Positions 18,854 through 63,698 of a stretch of DNA of 64,000 nt are shown here, piece by piece. The notes below the pieces were generated by a model. That model worked only from the letters and a program-made list of their open reading frames with translations, ran no database searches and was not told the DNA's origin. Location of the stretch: the NCBI GenBank assembly GCA_964199315.1, contig OZ116699.1, positions 24,428,001-24,492,000 on the forward strand. Direction: 5' to 3'. How positions within the stretch are numbered: the stretch's first letter is position 1; the number at the start of each line of letters is the position of its first letter. Position numbers and translations under genes: made by a program. Origin of the DNA: Orbicella franksi (Eukaryota).

Positions 18854-21718
18854 TTAAGTTCCTCTTGGTTTTCTAATTGATCCTAAAATTTGAGTGAAAG
18901 TACCTAATCCGTTTGAAGTTGTCTCATACATTTTAGAGTTCGTAGTTGACCCACCAGCTATGGACGCTACACTTTGTCTATTGTTAGAGTCTTCTGCGTG
19001 TATTTTACCGAAGATTTTGCCACTCATACTATCGTTTCCATCTCCTGCTCCTCGGCCTTTTGCACCTCTGCCTTCTGCTCCTTTGCCCTCTACATCTGTA
19101 CTTGCGCCTACTTCCCCTACTCCTTTGTTACCTACTTTTCCACCAACTGTAATCTCACCAGTGGCTCCCCTACTATCTGCTCCTCCACTTCCAGCTGCTC
19201 TCCATCCTTCTCCTTGCCCGTCAGAGGCTTCTCCACCCCCTGCTGTTCCCCAGCTACCACCACCACCTCCTGCTTTTCCCCAACTATCACCATCACCTCC
19301 AGCTCCTGCTGTCCCCCAACTACCACCACCTCCTCCACCTCCTGCTGCTCCCCAACTACCACCACCTCCCTCACCAGCTCCTCCCCCGCCAGCACCTCCC
19401 CCACCAGCTGCACCACCACTAACTGCTCCTCCACCAGCTGCTCCCCCACCAGCTCCTGCCCCGCCAGCACCTCCTCCACCAGCTGCTCCCCCACCAGCTA
19501 CTCCCCCACCAGTTGCTCCTCCGCCGACAGTTCCTCCACCAACTGCGCCCCCGCCAGTTGCACCCCCACCACCGGCACCACCAACAACTGCCTCTGTACC
19601 AGCTGCAGCCCCACCCGCTGTTCCACCACCAACAGCACCCCCACCAGCTGCACCACCACCAACTGCTCCTCCACCAGCTACACCCCCGGTAGCTGCCCCA
19701 CCACCAACTGTGCCTACTCCGGCTGCTCCCCCACCAGCTGCGCCGCCACCAGCTGCTCCCCCAACAGCCCCTCCTCCACCCTCTCCTTCCCCACCAGCTG
19801 TTCCCCCACCAGTCTCTCTCCCACCTTTTCCACCCCCACCGGCTGCTCCCCCACCAGCTGCAACCCCACCGGCTGCTTCTCCACCAGCTGCACCCCCACC
19901 AGCTGTCCCTGCACCAGCCTCTCTCCCGCCCTCGCCTTCTCCGCCAGCTGCTACTCCACCAGCTACACCCCCAGTAGCTGCTGCCTCACCAGCTGCTCTT
20001 CCACCTCCAGCTGTTCCCCCACCAGCTGCGCCTCCACCTCCAGCTGTTCCACCACCAGTTACACCCTCACCTCCAGCTGCACCCTCACCAGCTGCACCCC
20101 CACCTCCAACTGCTCCACCACCCTCTCCTTCCCCACCAGCTGTTCCCCCACCAGTCTCTATCCCATCTTTTCCACCCCCACCGGCTGCTCCCCCACCGGC
20201 TGCTTCTCCACCAGCTGCACCCGCACCTGCTGTCCCTGCACCAGCCTCTCTCCCACCCTCGCCTTCTCCGCCAGCTGCTACTCCACCAGCTACACCCCCA
20301 GTAGCTGCTGCCTCACCAGCTGCTCTTCCACCTCCAGCTGTTCCCCCACCAGCTGCGCCTCCACCTTCAGCTGTTCCACCACCAGTTACACCCTCACCTC
20401 CAGCTGCACCCTCACCAGCTGCACCCCCACCTCCAACTGCTCCACCACCCTCTCCTTCCCCACCAGCTGTTCCCCCACCAGTCTCTCTCCCATCTTTTCC
20501 ACCCCCACCGGCTGCTCCCCCACCGGCTGCTTCTCCACCAGCTGCACCCGCACCTGCTGTCCCTGCACCAGCCTCTCTCCCGCCCTCGCCTTCTCCGCCA
20601 GCTGCTACTCCACCAGCTACACCCCCAGTAGCTGCTGCCTCACCAGCTGCTCTTCCACCTCCAGCTGTTCCCCCACCAGCTGCGCCTCCACCTCCAGCTG
20701 TTCCACCACCAGCTACACCCTCACCTCCAGCTGCGCCCTCACCAGCTGCACCCCCACCTCCAACTGCTCCACCACCAGCTGCTCCACCACCAGCAGCTTC
20801 ACCACCAGCTGCTCCCCCACCAGCTGCACCCCTACCTCCAGCTGCTTCCCCACCAACTGCTCCCCCACCGGCTGGACCCCCACCAGCTTTTTGGCCGTCC
20901 GTTTTCCCGCCAGCTTCTTTACCTTCCTCACCAGCGGCGGGAGGAAGACCAAGCTTGTCGGTTAACCAAGATGGTAGCCAGAGCTTTGGGCCTTCTCCAG
21001 GTGGTAGTGGAGCTGGAACAGGCTTAGCTACGATCAGTGTTGGCATCGTCCAGACGTCTTCCAGTTTTTTGCCATCGGAATTGCAGCAACAAGGACAACA
21101 TGGTGGCATCATGCATGATTGCGGTTGGCACGGCAAGCAATCAGAACATGGACAACCGCATGCTGAGGGATTAAAACAAGCCCCTCCTCCTCCACAAGGC
21201 ATGAAGCATATGGATCCATCATTTTCAGGAGAATCGCCAGACTGACCTTCGTTCATCTTTGCCTTGTGATTTCCATTATATTTATGCTTTTTCGCGTATT
21301 TTCTCGAATTTTCAAGATTATTATTATCATTAACATTATCCGAGTCAGTCCTTAAACTGTCCTCGAAGTCTCCGTCGTTGTCTTTTTCATTCAACGTCCT
21401 CAATGCGTTTTCCAAAATCATATATAGCTTCTTAAAATCCTCCCGTGAAATCTCATGAACTGGACCATCGGGTTTCTCCTCCTCCATTCTTTTGGTAACA
21501 GAAAAGCCATGGCCGTGTCTTTGAATCAACAGCACTGAATTTTCCATATGTCTTGAGTTACGAAACGTTTTAACAACTAGGCCATTGAAATCCTGAATTT
21601 GTTGTAAAAGTCTGTAAAAGGTAAAGTAATCATCTTGAATCGATTTGCCATTGTATCCTCCAGCTACCGCGAAGTAAAATAAAGTTAATAGTACAAAAGG
21701 CTTGGATGCGTTATACAT
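18854..21718 (-). CDS. Gene A: secreted 954-aa protein with Cys-rich block, Pro linker and ~600-aa Gly/Ala/Glu repeat domain
   Basis: Single ORF with a hydrophobic signal peptide (MYNASKPFVLLTLFYFAVAG), then CFMPCGGGGAC...CMMPPCCPCCC, then GGX/GAAGG repeats. Confidence 0.85.
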   Translation of the reverse strand: MYNASKPFVLLTLFYFAVAGGYNGKSIQDDYFTFYRLLQQIQDFNGLVVKTFRNSRHMENSVLLIQRHGHGFSVTKRMEEEKPDGPVHEISREDFKKLYMILENALRTLNEKDNDGDFEDSLRTDSDNVNDNNNLENSRKYAKKHKYNGNHKAKMNEGQSGDSPENDGSICFMPCGGGGACFNPSACGCPCSDCLPCQPQSCMMPPCCPCCCNSDGKKLEDVWTMPTLIVAKPVPAPLPPGEGPKLWLPSWLTDKLGLPPAAGEEGKEAGGKTDGQKAGGGPAGGGAVGGEAAGGRGAAGGGAAGGEAAGGGAAGGGAVGGGGAAGEGAAGGEGVAGGGTAGGGGAAGGGTAGGGRAAGEAAATGGVAGGVAAGGEGEGGREAGAGTAGAGAAGGEAAGGGAAGGGGKDGRETGGGTAGGEGEGGGAVGGGGAAGEGAAGGEGVTGGGTAEGGGAAGGGTAGGGRAAGEAAATGGVAGGVAAGGEGEGGREAGAGTAGAGAAGGEAAGGGAAGGGGKDGIETGGGTAGGEGEGGGAVGGGGAAGEGAAGGEGVTGGGTAGGGGAAGGGTAGGGRAAGEAAATGGVAGGVAAGGEGEGGREAGAGTAGGGAAGGEAAGGVAAGGGAAGGGGKGGRETGGGTAGGEGEGGGGAVGGAAGGGAAGGGAAGVGTVGGGAATGGVAGGGAVGGGAAGGGAVGGGTAGGAAAGTEAVVGGAGGGGATGGGAVGGGTVGGGATGGGVAGGGAAGGGGAGGAGAGGGAAGGGAVSGGAAGGGGAGGGGAGEGGGGSWGAAGGGGGGGSWGTAGAGGDGDSWGKAGGGGGSWGTAGGGEASDGQGEGWRAAGSGGADSRGATGEITVGGKVGNKGVGEVGASTDVEGKGAEGRGAKGRGAGDGNDSMSGKIFGKIHAEDSNNRQSVASIAGGSTTNSKMYETTSNGLGTFTQILGSIRKPRGT
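19780..20780. repeat. Three ~327-bp (109-codon) coding tandem repeats within gene A
   Basis: The marker ctctccttccccaccagctgttcccccaccagtctct recurs at 19781, 20123 and 20450. Confidence 0.9.

Positions 21719-63698: not shown

Follow-up and report, generated by a model that had tools for sequence, protein, structure and literature searches.

How many genes does a long run of Cys-rich coding blocks on one strand represent, and what might its products build? The question is raised by a stretch of 64,000 nucleotides from the stony coral Orbicella franksi (GenBank assembly GCA_964199315.1, contig OZ116699.1, positions 24,428,001 to 24,492,000 of the forward strand), referred to below as the window and numbered from its first letter. 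An earlier note, made from the sequence alone, had described here a cluster of at least nine genes (lettered A–E and G–J) for secreted proteins. This number is an overcount. The window comprises about six transcription units (A, B, a gene with a shared leader exon, H, I and J), rather than nine or more, because D, G (an acidic exon), a module exon F that had not been listed, with its GGYG exon, and, to judge from the phase of their acceptors, E and C belong to one gene. We consider it reasonably probable that the locus, apparently confined to Hexacorallia, encodes secreted precursors that are cut at dibasic sites, and that its core is a single gene with alternative cassettes.

Layout of the Cys-rich blocks

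A six-frame scan (at least 7 Cys per 30 residues) identified 11 Cys-rich stop-free blocks between 18857 and 63768, every one of them on the minus strand, and no comparable block on the plus strand of that region, which bears out the same-strand clustering described before. The starts 27362 and 27711 belong to one cassette (C) read in two frames, 27711 being its 5′ part. The DNA of the window is AT-rich.

18857, 22445, 27362, 27711, 34805, 36313, 40294, 44832, 54245, 61710, 63562, minus strand: starts of the Cys-rich blocks
41664-42320, minus strand: acidic open reading frame (ORF)
39531-39773, minus strand: GGYG-rich block, the sole one within the cluster

Four of the blocks (40294, 36313, 34805 and 27362) have a module of ~88 residues in common, and three others (44832, 54245 and 61710) share tails of CCHD, CCEP and CCH units, with a Cys content of 63-68%. 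A PPKF-K-PLK-K motif is present in B, C, D and F, with the variant VPEFKLKPLKPK in E, and CCH-type repeats are found in E, H, I and J. The motifs common to neighbours, the dibasic KR or RR sites and, for A, B, the leader, H and I, the signal-peptide-like N-termini of the earlier description were all recovered. That description had also seen Cys-rich and Gly/Tyr-rich components mixed in one cluster. The mixture is real, but its distribution over separate neighbouring genes is not, since the two kinds of sequence are mostly consecutive exons of the same precursors.

A leader exon joined to alternative cassettes

The central gene consists of one leader exon and a series of cassettes, each built of a module exon, in which ~88 residues are conserved, and a tail exon whose product, after a KR site, is rich in Gly, Tyr, Phe and Pro. 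Its exons are as follows.

41708..42400, minus strand: shared leader exon (ATG at 42281, donor at 41708, ending in phase 1)
40294..40637, minus strand: F module exon (joint reads; module profile E = 2e-43), first base 40637, first residues VQDKR
39528..39743, minus strand: F tail exon (GPLKR..EKR, then GGYG/GPFG repeats)
36555..36926, minus strand: E module exon (ARR, module, CCHG repeats, RKRG; profile E = 6e-32), first base 36926, first residues ARR
36134..36267, minus strand: E tail exon (GDCSKR, then a Tyr/Pro-rich peptide ending in YYYF)
34840..35334, minus strand: D module exon (EKR, Gly/Cys spacer, module, phase-1 donor; profile E = 2e-42), first base 35334, first residues EKR
34416..34558, minus strand: D tail exon (AKRGPVKR, Tyr/Phe/Pro-rich 40-mer, stop; conserved in Porites and Acropora)
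27377..27853, minus strand: C module exon (GKR at a phase-1 acceptor; profile E = 9e-40), first base 27853, first residues GKR
26903..27073, minus strand: C tail exon, intact (PVKR, Phe/Pro-rich peptide; tblastn with the Oculina tail, E = 1e-23)

The leader exon contains ~119 nt of 5′ untranslated region (UTR), a signal peptide of 22 residues and a pro-region of 169 residues, rich in Asp, Glu and Lys, with a charge of −44. A search of the window returned a single copy of leader-like sequence. When a polyA RNA run (X23) was aligned to positions 39500-45499, the leader exon had the highest depth in this stretch. In this run, 155 reads join the leader to the F module (40637/41708) and 99 reads join the F module to the F tail (39743/40294), both joints having GT..AG borders on the minus strand. 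The acidic exon, the F module exon and the GGYG exon thereby form an in-frame precursor of 377 residues, whose stop codon, TAG, is the final codon of the F tail exon. Another 165 reads stop matching at 41708, and the letters that follow are identical to 35305-35334, at the start of D, 6.4 kb downstream; this join is in frame, like that of leader and F. The leader is thus joined to both the F and the D sets, which have separate tail exons and stop codons, as a gene with alternative 3′ cassettes would have it. Depth is ~570 over the leader versus ~170 over the F module, as expected if several cassettes share the leader.

F, E, D and C alike begin with a phase-1 acceptor and, next to it, a dibasic site; in each cassette the module is followed by a phase-1 donor and then by a tail exon with a stop codon. 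The E tail was found by tblastn with the tails of P0011 and P0012 (E = 3e-16), and its splice sites were located. RNA from E is present, as an RNA contig of another run (X1) extends into E sequence; transcript contigs of a related species retain the upstream intron and are uninformative on the leader. Beyond the stops of F, E and D there are AATAAA/ATTAAA hexamers, the 3′ ends being unmapped. Transcription, which the earlier note had proposed to check by RNA mapping, is thus observed for the central locus (leader, F and D), and also for H.

Several additional observations concern the RNA of single cassettes. The 3′UTR of F has an intron of ~630 nt which joins 39526-39530 to ~38892 (65 reads; the loose end at 39526 matches 38863-38892), and in Porites transcripts the F reading frame extends 11 residues further (P0038 versus P0023). 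At 39558 and 39590, within the GGYG repeat, 34-35 reads of run X23 break and continue with Gly/Tyr-coding letters absent from the window; this suggests an allele with a different repeat length, or else a close paralogue of the F tail. Several RNA-assembly products of a near relative (279-residue forms, P0062) retain the intron that separates E module from E tail (36268-36554), which is free of stops in them; these products may represent a longer alternative product or unprocessed RNA. Lastly, of two polyA RNA runs carrying the same species label (X21 and X23), one gave 2950 reads on the stretch and the other 0 in 10 million records read, which may reflect a difference in tissue or stage, or a labelling issue.

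A probable single promoter and a slowly evolving module

Comparison with Porites lobata and Acropora digitifera gave the following identities.

42401..42560, minus strand: conserved promoter-proximal block of the leader gene, 84% in Porites lobata, 70% in Acropora digitifera
F and D modules: 89-90% in Porites, 85-88% in Acropora
E module: 75% in Porites, 80% in Acropora
Leader: 65% in Porites, 58% in Acropora
Tails: 64-75% in Porites, 52-66% in Acropora
H and I: 65-66% in Porites, 53-58% in Acropora

Conserved non-coding DNA at the leader is confined to the ~160 bp that precede the transcript start (near 42400), identity further upstream being 33-45%. At E and D, conservation begins only at the acceptor or at most ~25 nt from it. 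A conserved promoter block at the leader, with nothing conserved upstream of the E and D acceptors, fits a single promoter. Matches to Sox and Fox motifs in this promoter were set aside, one of them overlapping the likely TATA position and the motifs being generic.

The Cys module is the slowest-evolving part of the gene, and still ~70% identical between coral and sea anemone. Such slow change speaks against a toxin or antimicrobial peptide of the fast-evolving kind and favours constraint by folding or by assembly partners. The description of the bodies as low-complexity does not hold for the module either, which at such identity is a domain and not plain low complexity. Within the leader, the signal peptide and the residues next to it are 83-96% identical over the first 50 residues of the Acropora leader (Porites, Montipora, Acropora and window), and both the signal peptide and a PVAS motif can be made out in Nematostella; these first 50 residues may act as a sorting signal.

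A module family of stony corals and sea anemones

In its short form the module reads GGF..FP..FGACVNNP.CECC..WPCMWPCCC.C.PPKFKFKPLKPKP.C.C. The consensus GGF..FP..FGA..NP.C.CC..WPC.WPCCC.C.PP.F..PL has 18 invariant columns in 21 sequences, those of Nematostella and Actinia included. A HMMER profile of the module matched F, D, C and E in the window at E = 2e-43 to 6e-32; a weak match at 54219-54320 was judged to be due to chance. Word-based searches and the full profile search of 1.84 billion representative proteins returned no more than 20 matches, all at E ≤ 1e-10, and every named match comes from a stony coral (Acropora, Montipora, Porites, Pocillopora, Oculina or Orbicella) or a sea anemone (Nematostella LOC116617360 isoform X5, and Actinia tenebrosa). 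The family thus appears to be restricted to Hexacorallia.

The leader–cassette layout recurs outside Orbicella, and models in five other species join a leader to a cassette. RefSeq isoforms X2-X4 of Acropora and Montipora combine the same leader with a D-type cassette, the A. digitifera gene covering the 9.6 kb that separate its leader from its last cassette; a Porites model combines the leader with F; and the layout is found in Nematostella as well. The synteny comparison suggested in the earlier note gave a matching order of genes and cassettes: in both Porites lobata and Acropora digitifera, one strand carries an I-like and an H-like gene, one leader, F, E, D and a second D-type cassette, to which Porites adds a C-type cassette. 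In Actinia five tandem modules are each preceded by an acceptor and then KR. Four annotated products start upstream of the examined stretch and end after successive cassettes, from which a shared leader upstream of that stretch may be surmised.

A maximum-likelihood module tree resolves the F, E and D types as well-supported (starred) clades, each with members from the window, Porites and Acropora; support is weaker for the C type (83/80), and Actinia cassettes 1 and 2 group with the F type with moderate support (88/77). The cassette types therefore predate the split between complex and robust stony corals, and the tandem cassettes of a sea anemone indicate that some form of the array goes back even further. 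Only the two species of the complex clade were seen to have the second D-type cassette; its lack in the window may be real, or the cassette may be hidden in the gap.

As regards existing annotation, public models of Porites merge several cassettes into genes of 362 and 1271 residues (L006 15032-19739 and 20410-22532), and those of Pocillopora (P0051) and Actinia (P0057) leave out the leader and begin directly with a cassette. Such merged or leaderless models are probably annotation errors caused by the cassette layout.

The claim that the locus is undescribed stands. Pfam at E ≤ 1 gave no family for nine of ten products and, for the acidic leader ORF, three sub-threshold matches, none of them to keratin-associated proteins (KAPs); Rfam gave no match on the window. 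Searches of the literature with motif strings, LOC and XP identifiers and automatic names, covering cnidarian papers and three supplement sets, found nothing on this family, whose public names are 'uncharacterized' or the composition-based 'keratin-associated protein-like'. The look-alikes retrieved from the ESM Atlas (KAP, LCE and NICE-1, with scores of 0.5-0.73) were rejected as reflecting composition only.

Flanking genes and other features of the window

The genes on either side of the central gene are the following.

18854..21718, minus strand: gene A, a single ORF of 954 residues with its own signal-like N-terminus
22442..23038, minus strand: gene B, an ORF of 198 residues, charge +35, with its own signal-like N-terminus
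44829..46114, minus strand: gene H, exon 1 46114-46030 (signal peptide), exon 2 45478-44829, product of 244 residues
54242..56674, minus strand: gene I, an H paralogue, exon 1 56674-56590, exon 2 54927-54242, product of 256 residues
61707..63698, minus strand: gene J, partial, internal exon 63698-63609, last exon 62074-61707, first exon beyond the window

Gene A encodes a 55-residue block with 25% Cys, followed by ~590 residues that are 52% Gly and 25% Ala, arranged in higher-order repeats of 109 residues (period of 327 bp, 2.9 copies, 96% match); it has no Pfam match. At its C-terminus, gene B has kept no more of the module than its final ~20 residues (CC..PPKFKMRPLKSKTKCGCPH). Neither A nor B is scored by the module profile, and BLASTP detects no similarity between the two. 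A resemblance of A to the module (tblastn E = 2e-4 without composition correction) was left as unproven. The exact product of gene B is found in Logan contigs, and RNA runs contain up to 64% of the sampled words of the A and B stretch (18700-23200).

Gene H ends in a tail of 57 residues, 68% Cys and 12% His, and its junction is seen in RNA as reads that end at 45479 and continue with 46031-46060; from Orbicella faveolata XP_020616527.1 the model differs at three signal-peptide residues. Gene I has the same phase-1 structure and a tail of 81 residues with 63% Cys. It is conserved in Porites and Acropora, and its model rests on sequence. In gene J, Cys/His repeats are followed by KR and an aromatic tail; both acceptors are in phase 1. 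Its internal exon is in frame with the last one, in phase 1-1, and no first exon lies inside the window, so that the cluster does run past the window end, as had been stated.

Further features lie between these genes.

28413..32533, plus strand: long terminal repeat (LTR) retrotransposon, LTRs 28413-28578 and 32368-32533 (166 bp), 98% identical
33010-33146: assembly gap in the putative leader-to-C intron, flanked by the D tail exon and the LTR element
52793-52920: assembly gap between genes H and I
24292-25369: tandem repeat between B and C, 378-bp period (190-bp sub-period), 2.8 copies, 88% match, apparently non-coding

The LTR element, the sole sizeable plus-strand feature within the cluster, lies between cassettes D and C, in the putative leader-to-C intron and beside the frameshifted C. 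Its fragmented ORFs match Pfam zf-CCHC (the gag zinc knuckle), RVT_1 and RT_RNaseH_2, its pol frame is broken, and it is foreign to the system. Both assembly gaps are clear of every modelled exon. A 620-bp inverted repeat (47128-47746 and 49668-50287, 93.5% identity) between H and I is probably a transposable element. Outside the cluster are 132-bp terminal inverted repeats (2986-3117 and 6346-6477, 96% identity) and a direct duplication of ~0.9 kb (7351-8228 and 8841-9664, 85-92% identity).

A proposed route from precursor to material

These observations can be accommodated in the following scheme. One promoter would drive a first exon encoding the signal peptide and the acidic pro-region (169 residues, charge −44), and mutually exclusive splicing would attach this leader to one of the tandem two-exon cassettes F, E, D or the damaged C. 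Each cassette would supply, in order, a KR or RR site, a Gly/Cys spacer, the mildly cationic module, a second KR site and a tail peptide. The products would probably be secreted, as their signal peptides suggest, and cleaved by convertases at the KR sites, the acidic pro-region masking the charge of the cationic parts in transport. They would then assemble into a material crosslinked by disulfides and perhaps also by tyrosines, to which the flanking genes might add building blocks: Cys/His tails from H, I and J, a basic protein with a module remnant from B, and a repetitive Gly/Ala-rich one from A. The recurrence of a basic site before the tail fits cleavage by proprotein convertases: it is of the GP(V/L)KR type, or a basic variant (RR, KK or RK), in F and D of the window, Porites, Acropora, Montipora and Pocillopora, PVKR in Oculina and in C of the window, and KR in Nematostella and Actinia.

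As to the nature of this material, a component of the cnidocyst, and of the spirocyst in particular, is a tentative lead; it has perhaps a modest chance of being right. The lead derives from the restriction to Hexacorallia, the layout of signal peptide, propeptide and KR site, and the high expression in adults. Spirocysts are cnidae confined to Hexacorallia, whose matrix and adhesive proteins have, to our knowledge, so far not been identified. It is tempting to go one step further, in what is a doubtful conjecture, and to suppose that the locus encodes these matrix or adhesive proteins, that the polyanionic and polycationic pieces released at KR sites condense before disulfides (perhaps also tyrosines) crosslink them, and that the array is an ancient device for combinatorial tuning.

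A number of points weigh against the scheme. The leader–D join is read from a 30-nt consensus of loose ends (agreement 0.89), not from a fully aligned joint, and a near-identical paralogous leader elsewhere in the genome is a possible source of these reads. No reads were seen that join the leader to E or to C. Compared with its orthologue, the C module exon is frameshifted twice within the Gly/Cys-rich 5′ part, as three-frame reading and three high-scoring segment pairs in three frames against P0009 reveal, so that C is either a decaying pseudo-cassette or the victim of assembly indels. Shared 8-mers upstream of A, B, the leader, H and I are not above shuffled controls, and co-regulation of the cluster is therefore not shown. 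Transcription of A and B rests on word shares, and the models of I and J are without read support. The range 'Hexacorallia only' rests on named matches, the coverage of octocorals and other orders in the library not having been gauged. From an alignment of 21 module sequences AlphaFold gave no confident model (predicted local distance difference test score, pLDDT, of 44), hence a fold, metal binding and mere crosslinking are not distinguished. The evidence is all at the level of DNA and RNA.

Alternative readings

Precursors of defensin-type and coral antimicrobial peptides have an anionic pro-region that neutralises the cationic peptide. The cassettes might likewise encode host-defence peptides, Cys-rich and cationic when mature, which the pro-region would keep neutral until cleavage at KR. 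The charges (−44 in the pro-region versus +6 to +9 in the post-leader parts), the dibasic sites at the junctions and the high expression in adult tissue would all suit such a function. However, the post-leader parts, with 168-212 residues and 17-24% Cys, are far larger and richer in Cys than such peptides, and their aromatic tails have no counterpart there. Moreover, the module is the most conserved part and the leader the more variable one, while peptides engaged in an arms race usually show the opposite. We therefore regard a defensive role as improbable.

Chelation of metals is known from metallothioneins and from His-rich jaw proteins, and the Cys/His clusters of the locus (CCHD, CCEP, CCHG and the module) could similarly make its products secreted proteins for binding or storing Zn, Cu or Cd. 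The tails of H and I, with 63-68% Cys and 12-15% His, and the CCH runs of E and J would be well suited to this, and the language-model look-alikes, being compositional only, leave room for it. Against it, Pfam at E ≤ 1 yields no match to metallothioneins or any other family, the signal peptides would route the products into the oxidising secretory pathway, where thiols pair, and the invariant Phe, Trp and Pro of the module are unlike metallothioneins. A metal-binding function accordingly ranks below defence in our estimate, as an unlikely one.

The first picture of the locus, that of nine or more independent tandem genes with promoters and 5′ exons of their own, the acidic ORF being a separate gene, would agree with the start codons and signal peptides of A, B, H and I and with the leaderless public models of Pocillopora and Actinia. 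For the central locus it is contradicted by the junction reads from the leader to F and D and by the lack of a second leader in the window. The cassettes, besides, open with phase-1 acceptors and not with start codons, sequence upstream of the E and D acceptors shows no conservation, and the models of five other species have a leader joined to a cassette. Independent genes are thus very improbable here.

Finally, a part in the skeletal organic matrix, with the acidic leader product acting in calcification and the Cys-rich parts as matrix, is the least credible proposal, even though the 169-residue Asp/Glu-rich region resembles acidic coral skeleton proteins in composition and one RefSeq name is 'histidine-rich calcium-binding protein-like', because the non-calcifying anemones keep the family, Nematostella and Actinia retaining the module at ~70% identity, Nematostella the leader–cassette layout, and Actinia five tandem cassettes with an annotated shared upstream start.

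The reading that we prefer, a gene with a shared leader and tandem alternative cassettes, brings to light a highly expressed and apparently Hexacorallia-restricted family for which we found neither a match in a domain library nor a paper. Its module evolves very slowly for sequence that looks low in complexity, and its unusual layout matches in order in three coral families. The annotation can be corrected where public models split or merge cassettes, the leader exon and the cassette-specific exons provide concrete probes for structures specific to hexacorals, and the composition of the spirocyst is a question which the locus could make testable.

Comparison with known systems

With minicollagens the precursors have in common a signal peptide, a propeptide and a dibasic site (KR or RR at the starts of F, E, D and C), a combination frequent in secreted cnidarian proteins and not diagnostic. 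They lack, however, the Gly-X-Y helix with poly-proline: a search of six frames for at least 8 G-x-x units found one Gly-run, in gene A, with no proline pattern. The spacing of the minicollagen cysteine-rich domain, C-x3-C-x3-C-x3-C-x3-CC, is absent from the conserved module and occurs only in the tails of H, I and J, which are nearly pure Cys and would match any spacing. More generally, cnidocyst proteins (minicollagens, NOWA, cnidoin and spinalin) share with the present ones high expression, a distribution limited to cnidarians, Cys-rich parts that could polymerise through disulfides, and elastomer-like Gly-rich sequence, here in gene A. The pro-region described here differs in being ~170 residues long and acidic, not short, and the likeness is drawn from sequence and not from cnidocyte or capsule data.

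Mammalian KAPs share extreme Cys content, Gly/Tyr-rich sequence and tandem co-oriented clustering with the locus, and public pipelines have named H and an Actinia protein 'keratin-associated protein-like'. There is, nevertheless, no match to Keratin_B2, Keratin_B2_2, KRTAP or Keratin_matx. KAPs are cytosolic and intronless, whereas signal peptides, pro-regions, KR sites and phase-1 introns (in H, I and the leader gene) are found here, and the Cys-rich and Gly/Tyr parts lie within one precursor; the resemblance is one of composition. Metallothioneins, which are small and free of aromatic residues, differ in that Pfam detects no match to them and that the module has an invariant Phe and Trp. For galaxins, coral skeletal-matrix proteins whose tandem repeats carry CC pairs at regular spacing, the comparison extends to Pfam, which matched no family of any sort.

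For the gene layout, the closest parallels are found elsewhere. A common 5′ part is spliced to alternative 3′ cassettes in the vertebrate gene for calcitonin and calcitonin gene-related peptide (CGRP) and in lola and mod(mdg4) of Drosophila. All have, like the leader gene, one promoter and first exon and mutually exclusive downstream sets with their own stop codons, and in calcitonin/CGRP, too, the common part is a pro-region and the variable part the mature product. The cassettes described here are distinct in being tandem paralogues, each a module with a tail, whose order is kept in three coral families, and trans-splicing, as in mod(mdg4), is not indicated.

For the chemistry of the products, marine bioadhesives offer an analogy, though no more than that. 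The cement of the sandcastle worm and the foot proteins of mussels pair a polyanionic partner with polycationic partners rich in Gly, Tyr, Lys, His and Cys. Polyanion/polycation pairing and GGYG-type repeats would be shared, but in the coral gene the opposite charges are pieces of one precursor, and 3,4-dihydroxyphenylalanine (DOPA), phosphoserine and gland traits, unobserved here, belong to the adhesives.

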